A DNA stretch of 64,000 nucleotides from Paraphysomonas bandaiensis (lineage: Eukaryota > Protista > Chrysophyceae), in assembly GCA_965644295.1 (NCBI GenBank), contig CBFFRP010000461.1:62001-126000 (forward strand), given 5' to 3'. The notes beneath the pieces are model-generated. The model did no database searches and was not told the DNA's origin. It saw only the letters and a program-made list of their open reading frames with translations. Of the stretch, positions 14,236-64,000 are shown in pieces. The number at the start of each line of letters is the position of its first letter. Within the stretch, counting starts at the first letter, position 1. The translations under genes and the position numbers were made by a program.

Positions 14236-14414
14236 GTATGTATGTATGTATGTATGTATGTATGTATGTATGTATGTATGTATGTATGTATGTATGTATG
14301 TATGTATGTATGTATGTATGTATGTATGTATGTATGTATGTATGTATGTATGTATGTATGTATGTATGTATGTATGTATGTATGTATGTATGTATGTATG
14401 TATGTATGTATGTA
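14236..14414. repeat. Perfect (TATG)n microsatellite, ~44 units
   Basis: Directly visible; lies between the divergent NDUFAF5 and SET-like genes. Confidence 0.99.
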
Positions 14415-42195: not shown

Positions 42196-45100
42196 ATGAC
42201 GACACAGATTTATTTTACGATTGTATTCGTTTTGTCCTGTTTTACATCAATTTATGCAGGAGATTGCGATGTATCGTCTGGTCATTGTTATTTTATATTA
42301 TATAACACCAGCTTTCAAGATGCAATTGATACTTGTGCATACCAGGGAGCTTATATTGTTACCATCAATTCATATGATGAAAACACTTTCCTGTTGAACA
42401 CTTATGGATATTTGTCGTCATATGGGTATATCGGGCTTAACGATAGGGAGAACTTCGATGAGTTTGTATGGGCGGGAAATGATACATCATCTTACACGTA
42501 CTTTGATACGGATGAACCCGATGACATAGATAACTTAAATGGTGGACAGTATGCCGATTGCGTTGTCTTTGATTTTGCTTCTGGGTTTTGGGTTGATGTT
42601 GCATGCGAAGGCCATGAAATTTATGCAATCTGTGAATACACTCAGACACGAACACCAACACTTAGTCCCACAGTACACCCAACAAAGCAACCGACAAACC
42701 TACCGACAGGGACACCGTCACAAAAACCGGTATACTATTATCCTCCGACGTCTCTGCCGTCGTCCGTACCTTCGTCGTCGCCTACAACTCAGCCGTCTAG
42801 AAACCCTACACAGCACCCAACATTGCAACCTACATCGACACCTACAACGACGCCAACTACATTACCTACATTGTCCCCTACTCCTGTACCAACATCAAAA
42901 CCCACTGCGTCTCCTACATCGTCTCCTACTTCTGTTCCCACTAAATTCCCAACTGTGCCACCTACATCATCCCCTACTCCCGGTCCTACTCCATTCCCTA
43001 CAACATCACCTACATCGTCCCCTACTCCTGTTCCAACACTAAACCCCACTGCGTCGCCGACATCGTCCCCTTCTCCTAGCCCTACACCAAACCCAACTGC
43101 GTCACCTACATTGCACCCTACTCCTGTTCCAACATCGAATCCCACTGTAACGCCTACATCTTCCCCTACTCCTAGCCCAACATCCAACCCTACTGTGTCG
43201 CCTACACCTTCCCCTACGAATTTTCCTACACTATACCCCACTGTATCACCAACATCTTCCCCTACCCCTAGCCCAACATCCAACCCCACTGTGTCGCCTA
43301 CATCTTCCCCTACTATTGTTCCTACACCAAACCCCACTGTATCGCCGACATCTTCCCCTACGAACTTTCCTACTCCGTACCCTACTGCATCACCGACATC
43401 TTCCCCTACTCCTAACCCAACATCCAACCCCACTGTATCACCGACATCTTCCCCTACTCCTAACCCAACATCGAACCCTACTGTGTCGCCTACACCTTCC
43501 CCTACCCCTAGCCCAACATCCAACCCCACTGTGTCGCCTACATCTTCCCCTACTATTGTTCCTACACCAAACCCCACTGCGTCGCCTACATCTTCCCCTA
43601 CGAATTTTCCTACACTGTACCCCACTGCATCACCAACATCTTCCCCTACTCCTAGCCCAACATCCAACCCCACTGTGCCGCCTACATCTTCCCCTACTCC
43701 TAACCCAACATCCAACCCTACTGTGTCGCCTACATCTTCCCCTACGAATTTTCCTACTCCGTACCCCACTGCATCACCAACATCTTCCCCTACTCCTAGC
43801 CCAACATCCAACCCCACTGTGTCGCCTACATCTTCCCCTACGAACTTTCCTACTCCGTACCCTACTGCATCACCAACATCTTCCCCTACTCCTAGCCCAA
43901 CACCCAACCCCACTGCGTCACCTACATCTTCCCCTACGAATTTTCCTATACCAATTCCCACTGTATCACCTACATCTTCCCCTACGAACTTTCCTACACT
44001 ATACCCCACTGCATCACCTACATCTTCCCCTACGAACTTTCCTACACTATACCCCACTGCATCACCTACATCTTCCCCTACGAACTTTCCTACACTATAC
44101 CCCACTGCATCACCAACATCTTCCCCTACTCCTAGCCCAACATCCAACCCCACTGTGCCGCCTACGTCTTCCCCTACAAGTTATCCCACAGAATACCCGT
44201 CACTATTACCTACACAAGAGCCTTCTCTAGATCCGACACCGAGTGAAAGACCTGCAGTGACTTCAATTCCAACTCCTGGAATAGGTGAAACAGCTACACC
44301 AACATCTGTAGGAAGTTCCACCCCAACAATTGTAGTAACTCCTGGGATAGGTGAAACATCTACACCAACATCTGTCGGTAGTTTTGTTCCGACAGTTGAT
44401 AATGGTGAGACTGTTACTCCAACAGTGGTAGTCGTAAGCCATGTACCCACTCCTGGAATAGGTGAGACAGCTACACCAACATCTGTAGGAAGTTCCACCC
44501 CAACAATTGTAGTTTCAAGCCATGTTCCAACTCCTGGGATAGGTGAAACATCTACACCAACATCTGTCGGTAGTTTTGTTCCGACAGTTGATAATGGTGA
44601 GACTGTTAATCCAACAGTGGTAGTCGTAAGCCATGTACCCACTCCTGGAATAGGTGAGACAGCTACACCAACATCTGTAGGAAGTTCCACCCCAACAATT
44701 GTAGTTTCAAGCCATGTTCCAACTCCTGGGATAGGTGAAACATCTACACCAACATCTGTCGGTAGTTTTGTTCCGACAGTTGATAATGGTGAGACTGTTA
44801 ATCCAACAGTGGTAGTTTCAAGTCATGCTCCAACTTCTGAGATAGGTGAGACATCTACACCAACATCTGTCGGTAGTTTTGTTCCGACAGTTGATAATGG
44901 TGAGACTGTTAATCCAACAGTGGTAGTCTCAAGCCATGCTCCAACCTCTGAGATAGGTGAGACATCTGCACCAACATCTGTCGGTAGTTTTGTTCCGACA
45001 GTTGATAATGGTGAGACTGTTAATCCAACAGTGGTAGTTTCAAGTCATGTTCCCACTCTTGCTGGTGGAGATACCGCTGAGCCAACTGGTTTTTCTCCTA

Positions 45101-48100
45101 CACGAACTCTACATCCTTCAAGCGTAGATCCAAAGTCGGAAACGCCTTCGTCTTCCCCGTCTTTACCTTGTCCAACTCCTGACTTTCACTGCAAGTACAG
45201 GAATATGTCCGTGTTTTCAGATTCAATGTCAAGTTTTGACTATGACTTGTTCTACACCACCCGAGACTCTACCTCTGTAACGAGTATTGCTAATCCTGAG
45301 CAGTTTTTTTGGACCGTAGATGACGATGACTTTGTTCCATTTGACGTAGAATATTATGCCATTGAGGCGTGGGGCTTACTGGATATTACAAATAATCAGG
45401 GTAGCAATACACATACGTCAGTGTGTTTCCATGCGTCTTGCACGAACGAGGCGATCGTAAGCGCCATTACTCGCTCCTTGATAGAGAATACTTACGAGAC
45501 GTTTAACTGTGGTAATTGTACCTGGAGAACAGATTATGGAAAGCTATACACCACATGTGGACATTTTAACTGTCCATGCTCTATAGAACAACCACATAAC
45601 TACTTCGCTGTGAGTAACAATTGGGGGTACTGGAAATGTCAACAGGGTGATGGTGCTGTGGTTGTAGATAGAGGATCCGTACTTGGTTTTAAATTACGGG
45701 AAAAGGTAGCTCCTACTGTTCCTGTGCTTAAAAGCGTCACCGGTCCGTGCTGCGGTAACGTGGTGACTACGTACACTACGGTGAATGTAACGGTGTCCGT
45801 TTCCACTTACGGAGGGCTTGTGTATTGTGGGGCGTTTTCCTCGGCTAATGTGATATCAAGTGTTTCTGTTATAAGTCAGCAAGGGCACTATGGCGTGATT
45901 CCATCTGCTGATGAAGTAAGTTTGAGTACTATTACAATTTCTGTGGAAGTGGGATTGCGGCATCTTGTAGCGAATGCAAGCAGCAGTGTAGCTTGTTACT
46001 GCGAAGATACTATCGGGAACCCGTCCTCGCTAGATGATGCCATCAATAAAGCTATCATTGTTGTACCATCTTATTGCAATGATGCTGACTTAAGACCACC
46101 CCCAAGTGGTTATGGTTTGAGTAGCCTGCAGGACTATTATACTCTCGAAGCGTATGAGCTATCGTACTACACACTTACTTTGGCGTTAGGAAGCTCTCCC
46201 ACAGAGACTGTTATTACGTCGTTGGTATTCTATGACTTCGGAACTTTGAATAGACGCGATGATGTATTCGTTTACAATAATCTTACCTTCACAAGTGCCG
46301 ATGAGGGGGATGACTTGATAGGCACATTTGTTGTGTATGGGGCAGTTGGACACTTCGATATCAGTGTCGTTTATTTTGGTCCGAGTGCTTATGAGTTTTG
46401 TGCGTATCATAACGCTTTGCCGTCTATCCGCATAGTTTCCGAGATTTCTGCAGCCCCATCACTCCTCCCGTCTCTAAACGGAACTGCTTATTTCACCGAA
46501 TCAGGACTGAGAGTTGTTGTTTCATTCAGCCGCCCCACGGATTATGCAGCTACTGTAGTGTCGACAGATTCATGGAAGTGTAGTTTGGTGTTCAGTTTTA
46601 CAGGGGCAAATGGAACTGAATGCCAGTGGCGTAACTCATCAACGGTTGTTATCGCTCTTAATAGCCACCATTCTTCAACTGAGAACATTCTTTCGCCTGG
46701 CGATACCATTATGTTGCGTCCCAATGTTGTTAAAGGATTTTGTTTCAGTGGCTCTTGTGTTAGTGCTCCTTTCGCCCCATCCTCCGCGACCATTGTTGCA
46801 GTGCCAAGTATTCATGTCAACGCGCGGGCAGTTTTGGTGGGACCTACATCAGTATTGAATTGCGAGGATTTGGTTATTGATCCCACCTTGTCCAGTGGCC
46901 ATGGATTGCGGCCATGGAAAACCATACGTTGGCGAGTATTCTCTGGGGACGGAAGCGATGTCTCTGAAATAAGAAATTACTTGACATCTATTACTTCAAC
47001 GGATGTTCCTGTTGTCATTCCCAGTCACATGTTGCATAATACGACGTATTTTATTTCTCTGGGTCTCAGAAACTTTATGCAAGAAAACTCTGATAGCCTT
47101 GTGTATAGCTCTGTTGAAGTCAGTGTTCTCTTAGACCAACCTGTACTTACTGTGTCGATCTCATCTGCTCGTAAGGTTTCTGTCCAGCTGTCATCGTTTC
47201 TATACTTAAGCGCTCAAATAGCAATGACAGATTGTGCGAATACCAACACTGGTAACAATTCTATGGATTATACGTACAAATGGACTGTGTACAAGAACTA
47301 TGTAGTGGATAGAACGGTAACGTCAACGTATCCACTGAATCCATCAGTATTCACATGTCCCGGTTCGTCCTTTAGTCTAGGTAGTACATACCAAGTGGTG
47401 TTGGCTGTGACTGCGACGTCTGGATCACAGTCTTGGACGTCGTATGACAAAGTATTTGTAGAATCAGTACAGACATCTGTTCGGGCTATAATATCGGGGG
47501 GACTTACCACTGTATCTTCACCTCATAATGCTCCCCTTATGTTGGATGGTTCTGAGTCTCTTGGCTCAGCGTTGTCGTATGCCTGGAGCTGTCGAATTGC
47601 TTCTGTGACGAATTTTGGGGCCAACTGTTTGAGTATTCTTGGTATATCATCGTCGGAGGCTTCTGCATCTGCTTTGAGTATTGCAGCGTCAATTCTATCT
47701 GCTGGAGTTAGGTATAGATTTACGTTGACAGTATCTGGGGCATACGCTTCTACCAAAACGATTCACTCGGCCTCCGTATTAGTGATATGTCCATCTGTGT
47801 CCCCTGTGTCTACTATCAAGATAAACTCTCCGCTTCCTGTATACCCTTTCAACCCTCTGGAGCAGTTTAAATTTTACGCCTCTGTTACATCTCAGTTTAG
47901 TGAGGGTGCTAATTGTACATGGAGTCTACACTCTGCTAGGTCTGAATTAGAGGCTACTGGTACTGCTGCCTCAATTGCTCCAGTGCGGAGATTTTTTTCT
48001 TACTCGCAACTAACGAACGGCGTGGACTTTCCGCTTGGACTCAATCCTGGCAGTTTGACTGCAGGAGTTGAATATACTTTCCGTTTAACGGTAGAGCAGC

Positions 48101-51100
48101 TGGGTATGCCTTCGGCATATATTGACATAAGGATGAACGGAAACACTGCACCCACAGGAGGGAATTTTTCTGTATCGCCGTCTTCTGGGTATTCATACAG
48201 CACAGAATTTCGTATGATTGCCAATTCCTGGGTTGATGATGCTACAGACTACCCATTGCGATACCAATTTGTATATCAGATTGGTGCCTCGTTTGATTGG
48301 AGTAAGACTTTTTCACGTGCCAACTCTCGCAGCACCTTGGCATACACCTCAACAACACTACCTTACGGAGAGCCGTCGGAGCATGATACCATTACAGCTG
48401 CTGTAATTTGTATAGACGTGTGGGGAGCGGAGGCGACTTCCTACTTCTTGGTTACTGTATCCCCAACATCTAGAAGACGCCTGTCGTCTGACCCTCTCAG
48501 TGCGTTGAGTGTTGCACTTAAAAGCAATCGCGTGCACGATTTGTTGGAGATTTATCAAGAAGCAGTCAATGTTATTAACGACGTAGCTCGGGCAGATTGC
48601 AGCGCGGCTCCAGATTGTAGTGCTCTCAACAGGGAGCCTTGTGTTGGAACAAGTCATACATGTGGGTCTTGCCTTTCCGGATATGCTGGAGTGTATGGTG
48701 ATTCTAATTATCATTGCCATGAGATAAGTTATCCGGCTCATTCGGCAGGGTACGAGTGTAATTCGGACTCTGAGTGTTTTTTGGGTTATTGCGACGGTGG
48801 CGTTTGTGTCCCACCACCGAAGCCCTGCCCGGCAGGTGGACATGATGGCTCCTCGTGTTCTGGTCATGGTGTATGTTCATACATGTATGTAAATGGTGAG
48901 CCATCAGCGTCACGTGAGTGCACTGTTGATAAATCGACGTGCCATTCGTATTGTTTGTGCGATGATGGGTACGGAGGACGGGACTGCAGCTTTACCGAAA
49001 TTGAGCTTAGTGAAATTAGTAATGCTCGAGGAAACATGTGTGAATACTTGGTCGATATAGCGGAAAAAGATGCGTTTATAGATGAAACTTTTTCCGCAAT
49101 CGTGAGCTACTTGCTGCAAGTATACGATCCCTCTGCGGTTGTGTCTATTGCTGATATGTCCAAATGCGAATCTGCTCTTCGCTATGTGACTGGTGTTTTA
49201 TCCGGAAGTAGTGATGGAAATATCGATGCCTATACACATATGGCAGGTGCTATTTCTGAATTTGCCCAGTCTAGCAGTTTTCTCGTTTCAGACAGTGTCT
49301 ATAATGCACTCGATGCGTTGGAAGCAGCTGTGCTCGATGGTATGATAGCTGGACAGCAACCAGTAGAATTTTTGGTAGACAGCTTTAGGGTATCTTACTT
49401 GTACATTAATCTCGAAGATTTGTCACTGTTATCTGCCCCTCGAACAGAGAAAGAGATACACTATAGCTCTCCACAGTACTCAATGTCTCTTCCTGCTAAT
49501 GGCCTTGAAATGTGCGAAGCGTTTGATGATTATGCTAAGGTTGCTGTCTTACTGTGGAACGTAAATCCCCAAAACATGGATGATTCAGATGTAGACAGCA
49601 GATTTTTTACTGTTGCCACGTATGCAACGTCCGTATCTAGTAATGATAGCACGCTGGCGGTTGATAAGCCGGACCATCATTATGAGCTTACCCTCCAATT
49701 GGATAGTACTATTAACACATCTCTTGTTGAACCTCTTTGCAAAGAGTATAGCTTCAGCACTAATATCCTATCTGATTGCACTTCTTGCATTATTAGCAAT
49801 TACGAGGCAACAGGTGCTACGATTACATGCTACGATGCCGTCGACTACTTCTGCCCTTCAGTGCAGGGCGGTAGTGTTTTGGGCGCAGCAGTTAGGCGAC
49901 TTCAAGCAGCAAACGACAAAGCCTATACTTTATCCCTGTCAACTATTATGGAGCCCAGTACACAGTCGTTTGATACCGACAATGTTACACAAAGCACTGC
50001 CCTGCTCTCATTTACCAGTGCATGGCTATTCGTTACAATATTTTCATTTTGGGGGTTGTACATCTGGGATAAGAGAGACAAGGAGGTTTTGGGAGCTCAA
50101 GAAGCAGACAAGGAAGGGTATCTTTCAAGTGACTTTAATCTTACTGCAGCGTTTGATAAGTCAGGTCGTGGCTGCGATACTCAAGTTAATCTAGTCGGCA
50201 TATCGCGGCAGTCGTTTGAGTTTGCAATATCACCAAGGAATCGTGCTGCGAAAAATGAGCCGATCGAAAGGGCGTCTTCTTTTAGATACTCAGCCATTTT
50301 TCATCGCAGCTCGACGTTTGCAGGGCGCCAAGAGCCGAAGAGGCGCCCTGCAAAGAAACTGTCAGTGGCAGAGCGGGCGTCATCGTTTAGACACTCTGCT
50401 ATATTTCCTCGTAGCTCATTGTTTGTAGAAACTTCAACTATGAGTAAAACTGGAACGGCAGATGCTCATCGTGTCAAGCCATTGTCTCCTATCCCACAAT
50501 CTCCTTCTTACAAGTATATTATTGGAGATGAAAATAATCCAGATTACCAGCAAACTGGTTCACATAAACAATTTAACGAGCCCGAGGACCCGGTGATGCG
50601 TGTGTGGGCTGCGTTTCCCTCGACCTCCTTTTTGTCAGAGCGCGACTGGTGGATCTGTATTTATGACGCTGTTTGCCGCAACCACAAGTGGGCACGCATC
50701 TTTAGTTATTCTTCTTTACGACTCCCTCGAAATATCCGTTTTCTAGTCGCAGCAACTGATTTGCTTTTTATAATGTTTACACTTACGGTGTTTTACAGCC
50801 TATACTATCCTGACGACAATCGGTGCGAAGATCTCTCTGGAACCACTGAAGCGAGGTGCTTATCTTTGAGTTCGAATTTTGAGTCAAATGAATCGCTTTG
50901 TAGTTGGAGTAATGATGGTCGTTGTGAAATGAAGGAGATCAAGCTGGATCTAGTATTTATTGTTCTGGTGACTCTAATAGCAGTAGCGTTCTCAGTTATT
51001 CCGAGAGATATGATAAATGCAATACTGGTGAAGATATGCGCTAAGCGTCCATGTTTACAGAACATGAGTTGGAGTGGTATATTTTTATTCTCAGAGCCGA

Positions 51101-52800
51101 GGGAGACTGAATGTGCAAATGGGAATACAGGTGTTGCTCCTAACAGCGAAGTCATGTCACTTGACATTTGCAATTTTACGATGGAGGGTAAAGTCGGAGG
51201 AATATTTCAGATCGAACCGAAGCTTTATGACCTTGCGCATTCAGATTTCATGAATCCTTATGAAGAGGTTGCATTGATTTTATCTAGTGTTTGCTCTGAA
51301 ATCCCGAATATTGAAAATACTACCATTGAGAAACAGGCAATGGTTACTACGGCATCAGAAATGCTTAGTCTCACTGATGTTGGGAACCCGAGACCACTTT
51401 CCATTCGCCAGAAGATTCTTTATGGTTCTCACAATGGGTTGAATATATGGAAATGTAAGAAAGCTCGCTCAGAGTGCACTTCTCTTGTTCACACGGCAAC
51501 CTCTCCGTCACATGTGGAGCCCGGTCACCCAGAGTACGCAGACATGGTTTTGTTACAGAATTTTGTGCTCGAGCAATTGTCTTCTATATGCCGCTTTGCA
51601 TATCGACGGCATATATATGAAATGGATGATTGCTCTCCAGGTCGAGTTAATATTATTCCATGGGTGGCTTCGTGGCTCTTGGTATTCGGAATGTGGGTAT
51701 TCATGGGTTTCTGGGTAATATCATGGACGTTGACCCATGCTGCTGAACCGGCGAAAGCTTGGGCTCTCTCTTTTGGCGTTGTTGTCTTGGTTGACATCAT
51801 AATGAATTCTTTAACTCAAATTTTCCTTCTCGACGTATATATGGCGCATGTTCTTCGTCCACAGCTGAGGGATATATTCTGTATCCTCAATGAGGCCCTA
51901 CATTTGCGCTTGTTGAAGCGCGTGTCTCCCTGTGATGGAGTCCGAATCGTGCAACACTTCTCTGCCTCTTGTCGAGCTTCACGTAACGCTGCACTAAAAG
52001 GGCATAAATCAGCCATTTTGTTGTCAATAATGGATGATGTGGATGTTGCTCTCTGCCGTCGGAACCGCGTGGAGAGTATACAGGACGTGGGATACGTGGC
52101 ATATTTGATGTTGTATGTTCCATCACTGCTCAATACAATTGGGGTGGATTATCAGCAGGCTGTGTTAGACATGACGCTCCCAATTATTTGGTGCTGTTTC
52201 ATTTGGCTGAATTATATTGTGAGCAAATTTTCAGTGTACATTCTAGTTGCCCTTTACTTTTTACTGGCCTCCCTAATCGTCGTTTATGTATATGTGTACA
52301 TGCGATGGAAGAGAGGTGAGGAGTTCCATATCAGCAGTGATCTAGAAACTCAAATTGAAAATGAAAATACTGACAGACCTCCTGTGAACGAATCTTCAAT
52401 TGAAATGAATGTGACAAGTATTGGCGAGGAAAAATCTGATGAGGGATCTCGATCGAGCGGTTCGGAGCATGAAGGTGCTTCAGCATCTAAGCCAACGTGT
52501 ATGGACAGTGCAGTGGTTGTTATAGGAACCCAGGATGAAAATGAAAGCGGTTTGCTGCTGGGAACATCTGATGATGTTGGTGAACATATAGAAGACACAT
52601 CTGGTTTATTCGTTCAGAGTGAAGATGTGGGAGTCATACTTCCTCGATCAGATATCTCTGCTGTCGACATTTCTGTGTCGAATTCGGAAGGCCTCGAAGC
52701 GTCACACAAGTTTGGAGACTGGAATCAAGTTCTGGGAACCGACAGCTTCGGTGATGATGGAGATCGACTCCACTGGTGGACAGGAGATGAGGAGAAGTAG
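42196..52800 (+). CDS. Giant intronless cell-surface protein: C-type lectin, Pro/Thr stalk, REJ/PKD-like region, EGF-like Cys-rich region, multi-pass C-terminus (polycystin-1/REJ-like)
   Basis: 3534 aa with signal peptide. CTL motifs (CY, YIGLND, EPD, DCV, WVDVAC, AICE). PTxxPT repeats. REJ-like [15 protein letters not shown]...F......[19 protein letters not shown] and [13 protein letters not shown]. Several hydrophobic helices after about aa 2600. Confidence 0.9.
42640..44240 (+). repeat. Coding minisatellite, 12-nt period (PTxx tetrapeptides) with higher-order 36/72-nt units
   Basis: Recurrent acatcttcccctac and ccaacatccaaccccact motifs, translated as [16 protein letters not shown]. Confidence 0.95.
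44266..45060 (+). repeat. Second coding tandem repeat ([34 protein letters not shown]-type units)
   Basis: Near-identical blocks such as acaccaacatctgtcggtagttttgttccgacagttgataatggtgagactgtt recur five times. Confidence 0.93.
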
Positions 52801-53478: not shown

Positions 53479-53900
53479 CAGGGCCTGGTAACCATTAATG
53501 GTAGTCCAGTTCTCGGCAATTATAATGGCCGTTAATGGCCATTAATACCTACTAACTCTCGTCCTCGTTATTTCTGTCGGGTGCACCAACATGAATGAAT
53601 CCAGTTGCAGATGTCAAACTGCTCTTCTCTCATTGCCTGTCAACTCTCTTTCATCGTTCCTTTGAATTTTAGCCACTGCCTTCTCAAAATTTGCGCTGGC
53701 AACAATGTTTGCATTCAGGGCAAGGTATGGATACAGTTCTGGAAATTCTTGTAGTAGTGTATCAAATAACTGGCGGGCTTGGTACAAATTGGTTCCATCT
53801 CTTTGTAAGAGGCGAGCGTAGCACTCTATAAATTCAAGTTGCGTCAAATATTATTTCAGCTTTCAAAAGTTCTCTGGAGTTAGAATCTGGAGTAAGGAGA
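53479..53900 (-). mobile_element. hAT-type transposon end with transposase fragment
   Basis: Terminus-like cagggcctggtaa followed by subterminal taatgg/ccatta repeats. ORF 53614..53847 (LQRDGTNLYQARQLFDTLLQEFP..YLALNANIV....FEKAVAKI......LT..E..AV) resembles the C-terminal part of oomycete-type hAT transposases. Confidence 0.65.
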
Positions 53901-54099
53901 TACTTTCTTTCTTATAAAAGATAATAAATCGCCACCGTGAAGTCTTTCATTTCCCGAAATTCTCTCGAAAAATCCGCATGTTTGGCGCCCTTCTTGGTTA
54001 CATGATTCACACAAGTCGTGTAACGTCACTGTATATCTTGCTTAAGGCGATCATTGCACAACGAACAAATATGATACAGAGCAGAGGGTTCTCTGAATC

Positions 54100-55368
54100 C
54101 ACGCGATAGAAGACGAGGAAGGAATATTGAAAACAAAAATCCAGGCGAGAATTCCACTGTGGTTTAAGAGATGATGCAGTTGGTGATGACTGTGAGGAGT
54201 AAAGTTTCGTTGGTGAATCCACCTGCACTGAAATTTTTAAGCAATATGTCAAAGAATTTACTGAGAAGTTTTATGCAGACTATATGCTCGTTTCCCTACA
54301 GGTGGGAATGAACTTCTTCAGGTGATGGAATTGTATTGCCTTGGATTTTTGGTTGCATTGGCAGTGTAATAGACGTAACTCATGAACACTGGGCTCTGTG
54401 TTACCTTGACATAAACTGGAAGGCCACTGGAAAAGAGGGATATCCTACATTAGCATTCGAGGCTATATAGTGACACACAGTCGTTATGTTTACCATTGCA
54501 GCATTGCCTTCTATGGAACATACAATGACATTACAATCAGTCAAAATGATGAGCTTATTTTAGCTGTTCTGGCTGGTGCGGTCTCCCAACTGAAGTATGT
54601 TCTGTATGATGAGAACGGTGTTCCTAAGCTATGCAATGGTGCGTATTTCTTGTCTGATAATGGCTATTCTAAGTGGGGCATTTTTATGCAGAAATGAGAT
54701 GCTCTGGAGTGAATGGGCCGAATCAACAAGGAAGGATATGGAATGTTTCTATTCATTGGAATGTTCGTTATCATTCCGCCCAGAGGTCATTCAGGATGCC
54801 TTCCGAACTGCTTGTATATTACATAATATGCTACTGGAGTACGATGGCTTGGCACTGAATGCGGAGATTCAACCGCTGAATACTGGGAAAACTTTTATCA
54901 TATATATAGAAGAATATGCCAACCTAACAGAGACTTCACAATTTTACGCAATAGTCTAGTTACGCATTTCACATATCAGTACTCTATAGGCGATATAATA
55001 TGATGGTGACCTAAATCTATGAGTAAGTTAAAACGTAATCGCCTCCAAATTCCAGTTTTCGATGCCAGGATGGAGGAACAGAGAGTAAGCGAGCACTATA
55101 CCACAGACCTTCTTTGCTGGTAGCTCGCGACAGCAATGTGGTCAGACATACACCTCCAGTATGGGTCATGGCCTTTTTTCTCACATAGACTACAACAACG
55201 GAGATATCATTGCAGTTTAATAAATAAGAAGGGGATGATTGGTTAACAGACGATCAATGGATAGAACGTGACCGCCTAGGTGAAGGTGAACACATCTTAC
55301 AACTGGCTGAAAATGTTAATCTTGATTGCTACCGTGCCTCTATCGTAATTGTAAGTGCTTAGCCAGTT
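54100..55368 (+). pseudogene. PIF/Harbinger DDE transposase pseudogene followed by a truncated SET-like segment
   Basis: GCIGSVIDVTHEHW, ATGKEGYPTLAFE, FYGTYNDITI, LSDNGYSKW, WSEWAESTRKDMEC and ACILHNMLLEYDG (DDE_Tnp_4 / plant transposon protein pattern), with frameshifts and stops. Downstream MGHGLFSHIDYNNGDIIAV and LDCY..CKCLAS. Confidence 0.88.
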
Positions 55369-56501
55369 GTAAGATGTGTTCACCTTCACCTAGGCGGTCA
55401 CGTTCTATCCATTGTTCGTCTGTTAACCAATCATCCCCTTCTTATTTATTAAACTGCGATGATATCTCCGTTGTTGTAGTCTATGTGAGAAAAAAGGCCA
55501 TGACCCATACTGGAGGTGTATGTCTGACCACATTGCTGTCGCGAGCTACCAGCAAAGAAGGTCTGTGGTATAGTGCTCGCTTACTCTCTGTTCCTCCATC
55601 CTGGCATCGAAAACTGGAATTTGGAGGCGATTACGTTTTAACTTACTCATAGATTTAGGTCACCATCATATTATATCGCCTATAGAGTACTGATATGTGA
55701 AATGCGTAACTAGACTATTGCGTAAAATTGTGAAGTCTCTGTTAGGTTTGCATATTCTTCTATATATATGATGAAAGTTTTCCCAGTATTCAGCGGTTGA
55801 ATCTCCGCATTCAGTGCCAAGCCATCGTACTCCAGTAGCATATTATGTAATATACAAGCAGTTCGGAAGGCAGTTCGGAAGGCATCCTGAATGACCTCTG
55901 GGCGGAATGATAACGAACATTCCAATGAATAGAAACATTCCATATCCTTCCTCTTGTTGATTCGGCCCATTCACTCCAGAGCATCTCATTTCTGCATGTT
56001 GGTGTCTTCCATGGACAAATAAAAATGCCCCACTTAGAATAGCCATTATCAGACAAGAAATACGCACCATTGCATAGCTTAGGAACACCGTTCTCATCAT
56101 ACAGAACATACTTCAGTTGGGAGACCGCACCAGCCAGAACAGCTAAAATAAGCTCATCATTTTGACTGATTGTAATGTCATTGTATGTTCCATAGAAGGC
56201 AATGCTGCAATGGTAAACATAACGACTGTGTGTCACTATATAGCCTCGAATGCTAATATAGGATATCCCTCTTTTCCAGTGGCCTTCCAGTTCATGTCAA
56301 GGTAACACAGAGCCCAGTGTTCATGAGTTACGTCTATTACACTGCCAATGCAACCAAAAATCCAAGGCAATACAATTCCATCACCTGAAGAAGTTCATTC
56401 CCACCTGTAGGGAAACGAGCATATAGTCTGCATAAAGCTTCTCAGTAAATTCTTTGACATATTGCTTAAAAATTTCAGTGCAGGTGGATTCACCAACGAA
56501 A
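54205..56501. repeat. 2.3-kb palindrome: arms 54205-55308 and 55361-56501, 52-nt spacer
   Basis: Arms are reverse complements except for a few SNPs, a 23-bp deletion (left), and a 12-bp duplication gcagttcggaag plus 2 extra bp (right). 1104+23+12+2=1141 matches the right-arm length. Confidence 0.95.
55361..56501 (-). pseudogene. Inverted second copy of the Harbinger transposase pseudogene
   Basis: ORFs 55811..56236(-) and 55710..55970(-) mirror 54470..54959(+). This copy keeps 23 bp (IFICPWKTPTC region) deleted in the left copy. Confidence 0.9.
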
Positions 56502-59500
56502 AAGCAACATCAATGAGAACAGTCATAGCCTTGTTGGCAACCAGGTAGACTGCAGTTGCACCAGGTAGATATCTCTACTCCTTACAACAACACCGACCTT
56601 CAAGAGATAATTTACATGTATCCACCTGCAGAGATTTTATGTCGCAAAGGCAAGGTCCTTAGACTTCCGTAGAGTATTGTAAATGTCCTTATAGGTACCT
56701 CAAAGGAACTATCGATAAAAGACTCCACACTCCGGAAAATCAGTTACACTTCCCAGATTCGCTGACAGCGACACTGGGCTCGATGTCACCTAACCCGTAG
56801 GTCTACAACAGCATTTTAGTTTTTATCAGAAATTGCCTCATACAATGGCTATCGAGACTCCAAACTACCGTCGCCTAATCATCTACAAAAACGGAATACA
56901 TTTCTCTATCATCAGCCTGCCAAGAGACTATCTGGCTACGTGCACTACTTTCGGAACTGGGCTTCCAAATTCCGTTTTCAACAACCCTCTGGTGCGACAA
57001 TATAGGCGCAATTCAGTACGTACATCATCGTCGGAAGAAACACATCGCCTTCAGATACCACTTCATAAGAGAACAAGCCGCCTCGTATTCCATTAGTGTA
57101 GATTACATGCCCACCATCAAAATTCTGGCCGACATCCCAACTATACCACTCACATCAAATACGTTCCACAGATTGCGGGATTCACTGATGGGGGGGAGAA
57201 GTATCAGCGTAGCCGCCAGCAATAAAAGTACAAAGAATCTATTCCTCCGGCAGCTAACTCAACCAAGATACCACGATAGATGACTTAGGGGTCTACGGAG
57301 TTTCCCACGATGATGTTGTATGTATCTTGGTGAATCCACCTGCACTGAAATTTTTAAGCAATATGTCAAAGAATTTACTGAGAAGTTTTATGCAGACTAT
57401 ATGCTCGTTTCCCTACAGGTGGGAATGAACTTCTTCAGGTGATGGAATTGTATTGCCTTGGATTTTTGGTTGCATTGGCAGTGTAATTGACGTAACTCAT
57501 GAACACTGGGCTCTGTGTTACCTTGACATAAACTGGAAGGCCACTGGAAAAGAGGGATTCCTACATTAGGATACAATACAATACAATTCCATCACCTGAA
57601 GAAGTTCATTCCCACCAGTAGGGAAACGAGCATATAGTCTGCATAAAGCTTCTCAGTAAATTCTTTGACATATTGCTTAAAAATTTCAGTGCAGGTGGAT
57701 TCACCAACGAAAAAGCAACATCAATGAGAACAGTCATAGCCTTGTTGGCAGCCAGGTAGACTGCAGTTGCACCAGGTAGATATCTCTACTCCTTACAACA
57801 ACACCGACCTTCAAGAGATAATTTACATGTATCCACCTGCAGAGATTTTATGTCGCAAAGGCAAGGTCCTTTTAGACTTCCGTAGAGTATTGTAAATGTC
57901 CTTATAGGTACCTCAAAGGAACTATCGATAAAAGACTCCACACTCCGGAAAATCAGTTACACTTCCCAGCTGACAGCGACACTGGGCTCGATGTAACCTA
58001 ACCCGTAGGTCTACAACAGCATTTTAGTTTTTATCAGAAATTGCCTCATACAATGGCTATCGAGACTCCAAACTACCGTCGCCTAATCATCTACAAAAAC
58101 GGAATACATTTCTCTATCATCAGCCTGCCAAGAGACTATCTGGCTACGTGCACTACTTTCGGAACTGGGCTTCCAAATTCCGTTTTCAACAACCCTCTGG
58201 TGCGACAATATAGGCGCAATTCAGTACGTACATCATCGTCGGAAGAAACACATCGCCTTCAGATACCACTTCATAAGAGAACAAGCCGCCTCGTATTCCA
58301 TTAGTGTAGATTACATGCCCACCATCAAAATTCTGGCCGACATCCCAACTATACCACTCACATCAAATACGTTCCACAGATTGCGGGATTCACTGATGGG
58401 GGGGAGAAGTATCAGCGTAGCCGCCAGCAATAAAAGTACAAAGAATCTATTCCTCCGGCAGCTAACTCAACCAAGATACCACGATAGATGACTTAGGGGT
58501 CTACGGAGTTTCCCACGATGATGTTGTATGTATCTTGGTGAATCCACCTGCACTGAAATTTTTAAGCAATATGTCAAAGAATTTACTGAGAAGTTTTATG
58601 CAGACTATATGCTCGTTTCCCTACAGGTGGGAATGAACTTCTTCAGGTGATGGAATTGTATTGCCTTGGATTTTTGGTTGCATTGGCAGTGTAATTGACG
58701 TAACTCATGAACACTGGGCTCTGTGTTACCTTGACATAAACTGGAAGGCCACTGGAAAAGAGGGATATCCTACATTAGGATACAATACAATACAATTCCA
58801 TCACCTGAAGAAGTTCATTCCCACCAGTAGGGAAACGAGCATATAGTCTGCATAAAGCTTCTCAGTAAATTCTTTGACATATTGCTTAAAAATTTCAGTG
58901 CAGGTGGATTCACCAACGAAAAAGCAACATCAATGAGAACAGTCATAGCCTTGTTGGCAGCCAGGTAGACTGCAGTTGCACCAGGTAGATATCTCTACTC
59001 CTTACAACAACACCGACCTTCAAGAGATAATTTACATGTATCCACCTGCAGAGATTTTATGTCGCAAAGGCAAGGTCCTTAGACTTCCGTAGAGTATTGT
59101 AAATGTCCTTATAGGTACCTCAAAGGAACTATCGATAAAAGACTCCACACTCCGGAAAATCAGTTACACTTCCCAGATTCGCTGACAGCGACACTGGGCT
59201 CGATGTAACCTAACCCGTAGGTCTACAACAGCATTTTAGTTTTTATCAGAAATTGCCTCATACAATGGCTATCGAGACTCCAAACTACCGTCGCCTAATC
59301 ATCTACAAAAACGGAATACATTTCTCTATCATCAGCCTGCCAAGAGACTATCTGGCTACGTGCACTACTTTCGGAACTGGGCTTCCAAATTCCGTTTTCA
59401 ACAACCCTCTGGTGCGACAATATAGGCGCAATTCAGTACGTACATCATCGTCGGAAGAAACACATCGCCTTCAGATACCACTTCATAAGAGAACAAGCCG

Positions 59501-62500
59501 CCTCGTATTCCATTAGTGTAGATTACATGCCCACCATCAAAATTCTGGCCGACATCCCAACTATACCACTCACATCAAATACGTTCCACAGATTGCGGGA
59601 TTCACTGATGGGGGAGAAGTATCAGCGTAGCCGCCAGCAATAAAAGTACAAAGAATCTATTCCTCCGGCAGCTAACTCAACCAAGATACCACGATAGATG
59701 ACTTAGGGGTCTACGGAGTTTCCCACGATGATGTTGTATGTATCTTGGTGAATCCACCTGCACTGAAATTTTTAAGCAATATGTCAAAGAATTTACTGAG
59801 AAGTTTTATGCAGACTATATGCTCGTTTCCCTACAGGTGGGAATGAACTTCTTCAGGTGATGGAATTGTATTGCCTTGGATTTTTGGTTGCATTGGCAGT
59901 GTAATTGACGTAACTCATGAACACTGGGCTCTGTGTTACCTTGACATAAACTGGAAGGCCACTGGAAAAGAGGGATATCCTACATTAGGATACAATACAA
60001 TACAATTCCATCACCTGAAGAAGTTCATTCCCACCAGTAGGGAAACGAGCATATAGTCTGCATAAAGCTTCTCAGTAAATTCTTTGACATATTGCTTAAA
60101 AATTTCAGTGCAGGTGGATTCACCAACGAAAAAGCAACATCAATGAGAACAGTCATAGCCTTGTTGGCAGCCAGGTAGACTGCAGTTGCACCAGGTAGAT
60201 ATCTCTACTCCTTACAACAACACCGACCTTCAAGAGATAATTTACATGTATCCACCTGCAGAGATTTTATGTCGCAAAGGCAAGGTCCTTAGACTTCCGT
60301 AGAGTATTGTAAATGTCCTTATAGGTACCTCAAAGGAACTATCGATAAAAGACTCCACACTCCGGAAAATCAGTTACACTTCCCAGATTCGCTGACAGCG
60401 ACACTGGGCTCGATGTAACCTAACCCGTAGGTCTACAACAGCATTTTAGTTTTTATCAGAAATTGCCTCATACAATGGCTATCGAGACTCCAAACTACCG
60501 TCGCCTAATCATCTACAAAAACGGAATACATTTCTCTATCATCAGCCTGCCAAGAGACTATCTGGCTACGTGCACTACTTTCGGAACTGGGCTTCCAAAT
60601 TCCGTTTTCAACAACCCTCTGGTGCGACAATATAGGCGCAATTCAGTACGTACATCATCGTCGGAAGAAACACATCGCCTTCAGATACCACTTCATAAGA
60701 GAACAAGCCGCCTCGTATTCCATTAGTGTAGATTACATGCCCACCATCAAAATTCTGGCCGACATCCCAACTATACCACTCACATCAAATACGTTCCACA
60801 GATTGCGGGATTCACTGATGGGGGGGAGAAGTATCAGCGTAGCCGCCAGCAATAAAAGTACAAAGAATCTATTCCTCCGGCAGCTAACTCAACCAAGATA
60901 CCACGATAGATGACTTAGGGGTCTACGGAGTTTCCCACGATGATGTTGTATGTATCTTGGTGAATCCACCTGCACTGAAATTTTTAAGCAATATGTCAAA
61001 GAATTTACTGAGAAGTTTTATGCAGACTATATGCTCGTTTCCCTACAGGTGGGAATGAACTTCTTCAGGTGATGGAATTGTATTGCCTTGGATTTTTGGT
61101 TGCATTGGCAGTGTAATTGACGTAACTCATGAACACTGGGCTCTGTGTTACCTTGACATAAACTGGAAGGCCACTGGAAAAGAGGGATATCCTACATTAG
61201 GATACAATACAATACAATTCCATCACCTGAAGAAGTTCATTCCCACCAGTAGGGAAACGAGCATATAGTCTGCATAAAGCTTCTCAGTAAATTCTTTGAC
61301 ATATTGCTTAAAAATTTCAGTGCAGGTGGATTCACCAACGAAAAAGCAACATCAATGAGAACAGTCATAGCCTTGTTGGCAGCCAGGTAGACTGCAGTTG
61401 CACCAGGTAGATATCTCTACTCCTTACAACAACACCGACCTTCAAGAGATAATTTACATGTATCCACCTGCAGAGATTTTATGTCGCAAAGGCAAGGTCC
61501 TTAGACTTCCGTAGAGTATTGTAAATGTCCTTATAGGTACCTCAAAGGAACTATCGATAAAAGACTCCACACTCCGGAAAATCAGTTACACTTCCCAGAT
61601 TCGCTGACAGCGACACTGGGCTCGATGTAACCTAACCCGTAGGTCTACAACAGCATTTTAGTTTTTATCAGAAATTGCCTCATACAATGGCTATCGAGAC
61701 TCCAAACTACCGTCGCCTAATCATCTACAAAAACGGAATACATTTCTCTATCATCAGCCTGCCAAGAGACTATCTGGCTACGTGCACTACTTTCGGAACT
61801 GGGCTTCCAAATTCCGTTTTCAACAACCCTCTGGTGCGACAATATAGGCGCAATTCAGTACGTACATCATCGTCGGAAGAAACACATCGCCTTCAGATAC
61901 CACTTCATAAGAGAACAAGCCGCCTCGTATTCCATTAGTGTAGATTACATGCCCACCATCAAAATTCTGGCCGACATCCCAACTATACCACTCACATCAA
62001 ATACGTTCCACAGATTGCGGGATTCACTGATGGGGGGGAGAAGTATCAGCGTAGCCGCCAGCAATAAAAGTACAAAGAATCTATTCCTCCGGCAGCTAAC
62101 TCAACCAAGATACCACGATAGATGACTTAGGGGTCTACGGAGTTTCCCACGATGATGTTGTATGTATCTTGGTGAATCCACCTGCACTGAAATTTTTAAG
62201 CAATATGTCAAAGAATTTACTGAGAAGTTTTATGCAGACTATATGCTCGTTTCCCTACAGGTGGGAATGAACTTCTTCAGGTGATGGAATTGTATTGCCT
62301 TGGATTTTTGGTTGCATTGGCAGTGTAATTGACGTAACTCATGAACACTGGGCTCTGTGTTACCTTGACATAAACTGGAAGGCCACTGGAAAAGAGGGAT
62401 ATCCTACATTAGGATACAATACAATACAATTCCATCACCTGAAGAAGTTCATTCCCACCAGTAGGGAAACGAGCATATAGTCTGCATAAAGCTTCTCAGT

Positions 62501-64000
62501 AAATTCTTTGACATATTGCTTAAAAATTTCAGTGCAGGTGGATTCACCAACGAAAAAGCAACATCAATGAGAACAGTCATAGCCTTGTTGGCAGCCAGGT
62601 AGACTGCAGTTGCACCAGGTAGATATCTCTACTCCTTACAACAACACCGACCTTCAAGAGATAATTTACATGTATCCACCTGCAGAGATTTTATGTCGCA
62701 AAGGCAAGGTCCTTAGACTTCCGTAGAGTATTGTAAATGTCCTTATAGGTACCTCAAAGGAACTATCGATAAAAGACTCCACACTCCGGAAAATCAGTTA
62801 CACTTCCCAGATTCGCTGACAGCGACACTGGGCTCGATGTAACCTAACCCGTAGGTCTACAACAGCATTTTAGTTTTTATCAGAAATTGCCTCATACAAT
62901 GGCTATCGAGACTCCAAACTACCGTCGCCTAATCATCTACAAAAACGGAATACATTTCTCTATCATCAGCCTGCCAAGAGACTATCTGGCTACGTGCACT
63001 ACTTTCGGAACTGGGCTTCCAAATTCCGTTTTCAACAACCCTCTGGTGCGACAATATAGGCGCAATTCAGTACGTACATCATCGTCGGAAGAAACACATC
63101 GCCTTCAGATACCACTTCATAAGAGAACAAGCCGCCTCGTATTCCATTAGTGTAGATTACATGCCCACCATCAAAATTCTGGCCGACATCCCAACTATAC
63201 CACTCACATCAAATACGTTCCACAGATTGCGGGATTCACTGATGGGGGGGAGAAGTATCAGCGTAGCCGCCAGCAATAAAAGTACAAAGAATCTATTCCT
63301 CCGGCAGCTAACTCAACCAAGATACCACGATAGATGACTTAGGGGTCTACGGAGTTTCCCACGATGATGTTGTATGTATCTTGGTGAATCCACCTGCACT
63401 GAAATTTTTAAGCAATATGTCAAAGAATTTACTGAGAAGTTTTATGCAGACTATATGCTCGTTTCCCTACAGGTGGGAATGAACTTCTTCAGGTGATGGA
63501 ATTGTATTGCCTTGGATTTTTGGTTGCATTGGCAGTGTAATTGACGTAACTCATGAACACTGGGCTCTGTGTTACCTTGACATAAACTGGAAGGCCACTG
63601 GAAAAGAGGGATATCCTACATTAGGATACAATACAATACAATTCCATCACCTGAAGAAGTTCATTCCCACCAGTAGGGAAACGAGCATATAGTCTGCATA
63701 AAGCTTCTCAGTAAATTCTTTGACATATTGCTTAAAAATTTCAGTGCAGGTGGATTCACCAACGAAAAAGCAACATCAATGAGAACAGTCATAGCCTTGT
63801 TGGCAGCCAGGTAGACTGCAGTTGCACCAGGTAGATATCTCTACTCCTTACAACAACACCGACCTTCAAGAGATAATTTACATGTATCCACCTGCAGAGA
63901 TTTTATGTCGCAAAGGCAAGGTCCTTAGACTTCCGTAGAGTATTGTAAATGTCCTTATAGGTACCTCAAAGGAACTATCGATAAAAGACTCCACACTCCG
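56368..64000 (+). repeat. Tandem array of ~1212-bp units (6 complete + 367 bp, continues past the window), each a copia fragment plus a Harbinger-derived hairpin
   Basis: The marker caatacaattcc recurs at 56368, 57579, 58788, 59998, 61210, 62422 and 63634. Identical 87-aa and 61-aa ORFs recur with the same period. Confidence 0.97.
56502..57200 (+). pseudogene. Ty1/copia pol fragment (RT C-terminus + RNase H) ending at a polypurine tract; repeated in every array unit
   Basis: A frame missing from the ORF track reads QWLSRLQTTVA*SSTKTEYISLSSACQETIWLRALLSELG...LWCDNIGAI...KKHIAFRYHFIREQ...VDYMPT..ILADIPTIPL....FHRLR. Upstream remnants SLVG, RYLKGT and TRRSTT. ggggggagaag follows at about 57190-57201. 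Confidence 0.9.

Follow-up and report, generated by a model that had tools for sequence, protein, structure and literature searches.

The window analysed here, a stretch of 64,000 nucleotides on contig C461 of the Paraphysomonas bandaiensis assembly, contains a long palindrome derived from a PIF/Harbinger transposase pseudogene, a dead Ty1/copia pol fragment, and a head-to-tail tandem array with a monomer homologous to both transposable elements, Harbinger (PF04827) and Ty1/copia pol (Table 1). The palindrome (54205-56501) has arms that differ by 7 substitutions in 1104 nt and by three indels, namely a 23-nt deletion in the left arm relative to the right, and a 2-nt insertion and a 12-nt tandem duplication (55858-55884) in the right arm; the left arm is 74% identical to the Harbinger copy C436 and 89% identical to the native relatives C199 and C20. 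The native continuation of the transposase relic to the left of the palindrome shows the left arm to be the original copy. C199 and C20 are collinear with the locus through the spacer and the distal 8-mer and diverge from it exactly at 55368/55369, the start of the inverted arm; they carry AACTGGCT, about 50 nt, and then AGCTAGTT in the place of the distal 8-mer, a pair that matches at 7 of 8 positions. Because these relatives run through the spacer and stop at 55368, it is a well-supported reading of the sequences that the palindrome was made by fold-back at a short inverted repeat; the palindromic junctions of PMC10766186, with short inverted repeats 40-80 nt apart, have the same geometry.

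Table 1. Features of the palindrome and array locus, in window coordinates.
Feature	Position	Strand	Evidence or remark
Harbinger transposase relic, native continuation left of the palindrome	54164..54204	+	DNA collinear with C436 Harbinger from 54173; tblastn (aa 1-175) starts at 54164
Left arm (H), PIF/Harbinger transposase pseudogene and 3' sequence	54205..55308	+	Inverted repeat; Pfam PF04827 Plant_tran
Segment of 1914 bp absent from every unit	54454..56367		Spans the symmetry centre asymmetrically
Fold-back seed	55301..55368	+	AACTGGCT (55301-55308), 52-nt spacer (55309-55360), AGCCAGTT (55361-55368)
Right arm (H'), inverted left-arm copy	55361..56501	-	Ends at the equivalent of 54205
Junction A, right arm/copia	56497..56501		5 nt CGAAA common to Harbinger (TTTCG on the other strand) and the copia fragment
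F, dead Ty1/copia pol fragment	56502..57326	+	aa 1190-1244 and 1444-1645 of the L023 polyprotein (tblastn)
Inverted-complementary 8-mers	56505..56512 vs 57311-57318		CAACATCA vs TGATGTTG; each 8 nt outside the Harbinger boundary, in register
Junction B, array junction	57319..57332	+	Copia fragment end ...TATGTATC, then TTGGTG = Harbinger position 54210
Tandem array	57327..64000 in the window, running on past its end	+	Unit starts 57327, 58535, 59745, 60957, 62169, 63381
Residual hairpin in each unit	57327..57712		134-bp inverted arms (H positions 6-139), 119-nt spacer
Filler GATACAATA	57570..57578	+	In 7/7 units; at the deletion junction

The copia fragment F carries frameshifts and an internal deletion, ends on the right 41 nt beyond the pol stop, and is 78% identical at the DNA level to about 40 dispersed copies; the ORF of its relative L023 matches RVT_2, rve and gag-pre-integrase. 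The dispersed copies extend past the F homology, by 388 bp beyond the right end and by kilobases beyond the left. For this reason, and because F maps inside pol by tblastn, a complete element or solo LTR setting the unit boundaries was rejected; assignment of the left flank to the same copia was also rejected, as this flank is without similarity to L023 and belongs to another dispersed repeat. Junction A, defined by alignment with L023 and with the left arm, is on its sequence a microhomology junction.

The array extends from 57327 to the end of the contig (C461:127541), over 8215 bp or about 6.8 units; seven successive unit starts are spaced 1208, 1210, 1212, 1212, 1212 and 1207 bp apart. Its 1.2-kb period lies above the TRF limit of 500, and the array was shown by repeat finding and blastn instead. 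The analysis covers a single assembled sequence, and the array ends where the contig ends, so that 6.8 units is a minimum. The unit consists of 54210-54453, the 9-nt filler GATACAATA and 56368-57326 (3117 - 1914 + 9 = 1212 bp), and the make-up given in the first-pass annotation, 244 bp plus filler plus 959 bp, proved exact to the base by self-blastn and direct reading. By self-blastn, the left part of the first unit (57327-57569) matches 54210-54453 at 99.2% over 244 nt, later units reaching 99.6%, and its right part (57579-58534) matches 56368-57326 at more than 99%. Units 3-5 are mutually identical, an identity that could come in part from consensus collapse in the assembly; unit 1, which adjoins the full-length copy, has three private indels and is the most divergent of the complete units; the last unit is partial and noisy (96%); and units 1, 6 and 7 each have variants of their own. 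The hairpin retained in the unit folds as DNA at -168 kcal/mol (z = -28). All matches to the unit of at least 96% lie in C461, and no second locus with the unit was found in the 62.5-Mb assembly; the adjacent palindrome is thus its closest relative there, where a closer locus elsewhere had been named as the finding that would count against a local origin. The far side of the array, sought across the assembly through the unit hairpin, was not found on any other contig. The term "satellite" used at first pass goes rather far for an array that has at least 6.8 copies, occupies one locus and reaches the contig end.

Arm-specific alleles connect the unit to the palindrome. At each of the three positions in the outer 244 nt that tell the arms apart (54269 T, 54413 A, 54448 C), the left (L) part of every unit agrees with the left arm; at its single such position (56437), the right (R) part agrees with the right arm. 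The partition of alleles by arm, on which the proposed origin had been staked, is seen in every unit. The four unit-specific variants reported as absent from the full-length copy are likewise all present, at progenitor positions 54371, 56406, 56540 and 56787, the copia alignment at 56540 being too unreliable to polarise that variant. The collinearity of C436 with the left arm takes in the native left flank of that arm (54173-54204) and continues across 54453/54454; because C436 runs across this breakpoint, the 1914-bp segment is ancestral and the filler junction derived, which bears out the claimed direction from the full-length form to the deletion unit. Both arms agree against the unit states at 54371 and 56406, which are therefore derived, and since these states and the filler are common to all units, they point to a single founder; on this sequence evidence a single origin of the array units is well supported. 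At 56787 the copia outgroup has the unit state and the change is private to the full-length copy, which is for this reason a sister of the founder and not its template. The description of 54210-57326 as the progenitor accordingly holds for the full-length form, which is ancestral, but not for the surviving copy as the literal template. Divergence decreases from the arms (7/1104) to the full-length copy against the units (4/1203) to the identical units 3-5; the first two values (0.63% and 0.33%) do not differ significantly (Fisher P = 0.37), so the order of palindrome first and duplication later rests on the allele partition. The shared 54413 A suggests that the L part was derived from the left arm at a time when the two arms already differed, with the qualification that C436, at 74% identity, is too distant an outgroup to polarise this site firmly.

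Of the deleted segment, about 900 nt lay left of the centre of symmetry (at about 55353) and about 1010 nt right of it. The breakpoints of the deletion are without shared homology, and the join holds the filler, which lengthens a 5-nt period from 1.8 to 3.4 copies. The filler had been described as a copy of the adjacent atacaata; a match to the flank is present, but it is exact over 7 nt (ATACAAT, 56370-56376, 2 nt inside the right breakpoint) and not over 8. In about 2.5% of trials a random 9-mer matches equally well or better (at least 7 nt) around the two breakpoints, and the filler was probably copied from this adjacent motif, a reading that rests on these 7 nt.

We read the locus as a young transposon-derived tandem array beside its full-length sister copy, with a probability of roughly 78%. 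In a well-supported first step, a dead PIF/Harbinger element would have broken at the equivalent of 55368; its 3' end would have folded back on the short inverted repeat, whose 8-nt halves lie about 50 nt apart, and copied the element in the reverse direction, yielding a 2.3-kb palindrome, H-c-H'. The backward copy would then have stopped at 54205-54210 and joined F through the 5-nt microhomology, a step that the joined sequences show and for which the mechanism is presumed. Another forward copy of the H start may next have been placed immediately behind F, beginning at that same nucleotide. It may have come from the multi-switch repair event itself, which would leave an "inverted triplication" (forward-reverse-forward) whose two identical ends enclose F, or from a later break at the palindrome base; by either route direct repeats 3117 bp apart would result, a substrate for unequal sister exchange or circle excision. 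In a fourth and again well-supported step, the unstable palindrome in one 3.1-kb copy would have lost 1914 bp across its centre by end joining with the 9-nt filler, probably copied from the adjacent ATACAAT, leaving, in place of the long palindrome and its 52-nt spacer, a 134-bp inverted repeat whose spacer measures 119 nt. Finally, the stabilised 1212-bp copy would have gained two or three substitutions and multiplied into an array of near-identical copies, at least 6.8 in number, presumably via unequal exchange or rolling circle, while the old full-length form persisted at the array edge. The interpretation first offered, of duplication, loss of the centre by end joining and amplification of one derived template, is supported, with amendments concerning the template, the breakpoint and the word satellite.

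The third step is where readings diverge, and junction B bears most directly on it. The Harbinger breakpoints of junctions A and B lie within 5 nt of each other (54205-54210); the duplicated segment starts, at 54210, where the palindrome has its outer edge, a match for which a later, independent duplication does not account. The duplication was thus probably tied to the palindrome or to its founding event and not to an independent later breakpoint. Formation of junction B by fold-back of TGATGTTG onto CAACATCA was rejected, as it predicts CTTTTTCG together with right-arm alleles, whereas TATGTATC with left-arm alleles is observed.

A later, independent tandem duplication of 54210-57326 as the source of junction B, the form in which the third step was proposed at first pass, is a reading to which we give somewhat less than an even chance. 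The palindrome and F would long have stood alone, followed by native copia 3' sequence, and the match with the palindrome edge would be due to a hairpin or cruciform that broke at its base. This history is consistent with the state at 54413, where the L part of the unit and the left arm share A and the right arm and C436 have G, the 74% identity of this polarising outgroup counting against it; with the finding of no second F copy elsewhere, as fits an F native to the locus; and with the tandem duplications carrying templated inserts that are reported for Pol theta-dependent end joining (PMC7368036, PMC8654963). It requires, on the other hand, that two separate rearrangements share one 5-nt interval, which for unconnected events has a probability of about 0.3%, and we could not, by reasoning, derive junction B in a simple way from the known cuts at a cruciform base.

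To the formation of junctions A and B in one event we give a chance only slightly lower. Two identical ends broken at 54205-54210 would have been joined via a captured or copied copia fragment, giving H-c-H'-F-H, the ends being sister chromatids or both ends of a snapped-back replicated fragment, as in the dimeric circle of origin-dependent inverted-repeat amplification (ODIRA); unequal exchange involving the two H copies in direct orientation would then have produced the array. Both junctions would thereby fall at the same Harbinger nucleotide, as they do, and the 3117-bp period would equal the spacing of the direct H copies, making an extra junction unnecessary; the inverted triplications of PMC10766186 likewise have the forward-reverse-forward order and a central short inverted repeat with a spacer of this size (about 50 nt here), and are described there as unstable and subject to secondary deletions at their palindromic junctions. 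Against this stand the second junction, an 830-bp foreign fragment where ODIRA predicts a native short inverted repeat, and the rest of the Harbinger element, which is expected after the last H copy and was sought in the assembly but not found; the shared state at 54413 would, moreover, require gene conversion or homoplasy. A fuller version, in which such an inverted-triplication-type repair product seeded the array, its two direct copies set the 3.1-kb period, and the centre deletion gave a stable monomer that took over, is slightly less likely again. If it is true, new satellites could arise naturally by way of the fold-back and inverted-repeat amplification intermediates that are known from copy-number variants in yeast and human.

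It is improbable that the array is an assembly artefact, in which the chromosome would hold the full-length copy only, perhaps with one unit, and the remaining units would be concatemeric reads of a 1.2-kb extrachromosomal circle, or rolling-circle or multiple displacement amplification (MDA) products, joined through the 959-bp identity. The position of the array at a contig end, the noisy last unit, the identical units 3-5 and the lack of a contig with the far side fit such an artefact. The arms are nevertheless set apart by alleles and by the 23-, 12- and 2-nt indels, and every unit inherits the alleles consistently, which argues for a real sequence history and not for in-vitro chimerism; the private variants of units 1, 6 and 7 argue in the same direction, and a circle would share the same origin, so that only the word "array" would fall. 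The converse history, with an ancestral array and a full-length copy that is a unit later enlarged by 1.9 kb, has formal symmetry alone in its favour and was rejected with hardly any residual doubt, as the transposase reading frame of Harbinger runs on into the 1914 bp, which are collinear with the independent copies C436, C199 and C20 across both breakpoints, and the units carry derived states against both arms.

The locus is a clear and unusually legible case of a known kind of event, a transposon-derived nascent satellite shaped by palindrome centre deletion, and it is not unprecedented. The origin of most satellites has been lost by the time they are observed; here four rearrangement junctions that followed one another (the fold-back seed, the microhomology junction, the array junction and the centre deletion with its filler) can be read within 10 kb, with junction polarity fixed by independent outgroup copies. 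It provides a natural example linking palindrome formation, palindrome stabilisation and tandem amplification, and is suited to tests of circle-based against unequal-exchange models; a new kind of process is not revealed.

Transposon-derived nascent satellites include Tetris TIR-220 in Drosophila virilis (PMC4079207), tandem transposable element dimers acting as satellite seeds (PMC5932611), and retrotransposon-derived tandem repeats in plants (PMC7004042). The present array resembles these systems in its transposable element monomer, its position beside or inside the source, and its young and homogeneous copies; in contrast to them, its monomer combines parts of two dead elements that are unrelated, Harbinger and copia, and was shaped by palindrome centre deletion instead of being drawn from a pre-existing internal repeat or a double insertion. 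As assembled, with at least 6.8 copies at one locus and 8.2 kb up to the contig end, it would not yet count as a satellite of the usual kind. The proposed deletion step is similar to the centre-break palindrome revision of Cunningham et al. (2003), as cited in PMC3300023: a long palindrome with a short spacer (here 1.1-kb arms and 52 nt) undergoes asymmetric loss including the centre, is rejoined without long homology, and yields a shorter inverted repeat with a longer spacer that is more stable. In that account centre-break revision is described for transgenes and somatic cells, whereas here it would be a fixed germline or clonal event in a protist; the likeness is read from the product alone, and hairpin nicking would be the presumed intermediate step. 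The filler, with 7 of its 9 nt shared with sequence 2 nt from the breakpoint, also recalls Pol theta end joining with templated insertions (PMC7368036, PMC8654963), a likeness that concerns the sequence of one junction. With the palindromes and ODIRA inverted triplications of PMC10766186, the locus shares a native spacer of about 50 nt kept at the central junction between short inverted repeats, a forward-reverse-forward order in which one Harbinger nucleotide is the starting point common to the left arm, the right arm and the L part of unit 1, and a later secondary deletion at the palindromic junction. It departs from them in its second junction, an 830-bp copia fragment joined via 5-nt microhomology in place of a native short inverted repeat, and in the size of the amplified segment, 1.1 kb here against tens of kilobases; this likeness is drawn from sequence comparison.

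When positions 54001-57800 were compared with the whole window and the junctions were read directly, the array monomer proved exact to the base as proposed in the first-pass annotation, that is, a left-arm piece, a 9-nt filler and a copy of 56368-57326. The segment 54210-54453 first recurs at 57327-57569 and has five further recurrences within the window, each time with the filler GATACAATA and a copy of 56368-57326 behind it, in that order; the 3117 bp of the full-length copy that adjoins the array, less 1914 bp and plus 9 bp, give a unit of 1212 bp, and the spacing between copies is 1207-1212 bp. The array runs beyond the window to the contig end (C461:127541), for a total of 8215 bp or approximately 6.8 units; the final partial unit has only 96% identity and many small indels, a common sign of weak support at the end of a contig.

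The transposase-hairpin part of the unit was used as the query in a search of the 62.5-Mb eukaryotic assembly (669 contigs; the window is C461:62001-126000), with all candidates scored. Across this assembly it has no second locus, apart from a 73% relative on another contig, C436; the refuting case named in the first-pass annotation, a locus closer to the units than the adjacent palindrome, was not found. The array forms the end of its contig, and its far side was not found in the assembly. All results come from this one assembly; the copy number, and even the placement of every unit in the chromosome, are provisional, and an assembly artefact made of concatemeric circle reads is unlikely.

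Features of the window, with coordinates and basis of assignment
Feature	Position (strand)	Description	Evidence
Palindrome	54205-56501	Arms are a PIF/Harbinger transposase pseudogene	Pfam PF04827; tblastn against 237-aa ORF of C436
Copia fragment	56502-57326	Dead Ty1/copia pol piece, 825 bp, right of the palindrome	
Left flank repeat	53555-54114	Third dispersed repeat, unrelated to the Harbinger and copia parts	
Long ORF	42196-52800 (+)	Uninterrupted, 3534 aa; N-terminal lectin-like region; ~1.3 kb of 48-nt Pro/Thr-rich repeats (42865-44198) and 111/192-nt repeats (44337-45057); predicted product resembles a giant surface protein of mucin-like type	
Microsatellite	14236-14414	Perfect (GTAT)x45	

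Collinearity between the Harbinger copy on C436 and the left arm starts at 54173, 32 nt before the palindrome, and extends across 54453/54454; the left arm and its flank are therefore original, the 1914 bp belong to the ancestral state and the filler junction to the derived one, which excludes an array-first history with a derived full-length copy. The filler shares 7 nt (ATACAAT) with 56370-56376, 2 nt inside the right breakpoint, in keeping with the earlier proposal that it was copied from adjacent DNA, and it raises the copy number of a 5-nt period from 1.8 to 3.4; a match of at least 7 nt within 20 nt of either breakpoint is expected by chance for approximately 2.5% of random 9-mers of local composition. 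End joining with templated synthesis would be a plausible source, though not a proven one. The unit retains a 134-bp inverted repeat with a 119-nt spacer (predicted fold, -168 kcal/mol, z = -28), compared to 1.1-kb arms and 52 nt in the original; this shortening fits the revision of long palindromes into more stable forms by asymmetric central deletions, the centre-break mechanism cited in PMC3300023. Inverted triplications also undergo secondary deletions (PMC10766186).

The alleles partition by arm, as had been claimed: three sites in the outer 244 nt distinguish the arms (54269, 54413 and 54448), and at each of them the forward parts of all units match the left arm, while the reverse parts match the right arm at their single informative site. 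Four substitutions relative to the full-length copy, also noted previously, are common to all units (54371, 56406, 56540 and 56787), and three of them were polarised. At 54371 and 56406 the units stand against both arms and thus carry derived states, which points to a single founder; at 56787 they share the state of the copia outgroup, which indicates a private change in the full-length copy. The full-length copy was therefore not itself the template; it and the founder unit are sisters. Among the units, 3-5 are identical; unit 1, which borders the full-length copy, carries three indels of its own, and units 6 and 7 have one substitution in common; an identical core with a divergent edge is the pattern expected under homogenisation by unequal exchange, to which consensus collapse could contribute.

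For the palindrome itself, a related element provides an outgroup in three copies (C199 and C20, 89% identical; C298, 81%), collinear with the window through the inner left arm and the entire 52-nt spacer, as far as 8 nt into the right arm, at 55368; C199 and C20, read directly, diverge completely from the window sequence thereafter. Both carry AACTGGCT, approximately 50 nt, and AGCTAGTT, an inverted pair matching at 7/8 positions, whereas the pair in the window is perfect (AGCCAGTT). This outgroup test supports reading the palindrome centre as the signature of a 3' end that would have folded back on the short inverted repeat and copied its own strand, generating the palindrome. The geometry, short repeats approximately 50 nt apart, matches the palindromic junctions of yeast and human inverted copy-number variants, where short repeats lie 40-80 nt apart (PMC10766186). 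Between the arms there are 7 substitutions in 1104 nt; the left arm lacks 23 nt by deletion, and the right arm has gained 2 nt by insertion and 12 nt by tandem duplication. The 23 nt encode the conserved PWKTP stretch, kept in the copied right arm (55811-56236, -) and lost from the original left arm (54470-54959, +); thus, each arm has decayed independently since the fold-back. C199 (519935-522242) and C20 carry a 2308-bp element with inverted ends of ~57 nt, 99.96% identical between them, and C298 has a 95% copy; the element looks like a DNA transposon that moved recently, and has just 332 nt in common with the palindrome arm.

The copia fragment has 78% identity to a young dispersed family of ~40 copies, with a full ORF containing RVT_2, integrase and gag-pre-integrase domains. 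It corresponds to aa 1190-1244 and 1444-1645, frameshifted, and ends 41 nt past the pol stop; it is an internal fragment, and neither a complete element nor a solo LTR. Copies of the family are 99.6-99.8% identical, and contig breaks in the assembly often fall inside it; many contigs (C148, C45, C64, C611, C335, C421) start ~1.9 kb upstream of one common copia pol position. An inverted pair in the fragment, CAACATCA and TGATGTTG (56505-56512 and 57311-57318), both native copia sequence, lies in register, each 8 nt outside a Harbinger boundary (10 of 16 matches, binomial P = 0.0016). Fold-back from this pair is ruled out as the source of the array junction, since neither the 8 nt in between nor the alleles of the arms agree with it.

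The right arm ends at the equivalent of 54205 and passes into copia sequence (junction A) with 5 nt, CGAAA, common to both parents; junction A is therefore a microhomology junction, with its Harbinger breakpoint anywhere within 54205-54210. At the array junction (junction B), the copia fragment end, 57326, is joined to 54210, so that two rearrangements fall at one Harbinger nucleotide, a coincidence with a chance of ~0.3% if B is an independent breakpoint within ~3.3 kb. The model in the first-pass annotation does not address the coincidence. Junction B may be the younger of the two, formed when the hairpin or cruciform of the palindrome broke at its base; this is weakly favoured by 54413, where the left arm and units share A and the right arm and C436 have G, yet C436 is just 74% identical, and such a signal would be lost through conversion between the direct repeats. 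Alternatively, A and B may have formed together, as the copia fragment linked two identical ends that had broken at 54205-54210; the left-arm sequence would then stand in forward, reverse and forward copies, an inverted-triplication-like product, and direct copies 3117 bp apart would drive unequal exchange. The two readings are about equally probable; arm divergence (0.63%) and divergence between full-length copy and units (0.33%) do not differ significantly (P = 0.37).

Satellites and tandem arrays derived from transposon sequence are well documented in the literature (PMC4079207, PMC5932611, PMC7004042; reviews), which likewise documents palindrome centre deletions, palindromes seeded by short inverted repeats, and end joining with templated fillers. 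Compared to these systems, the locus is a new, unusually legible instance that combines known processes, and no new kind of process.
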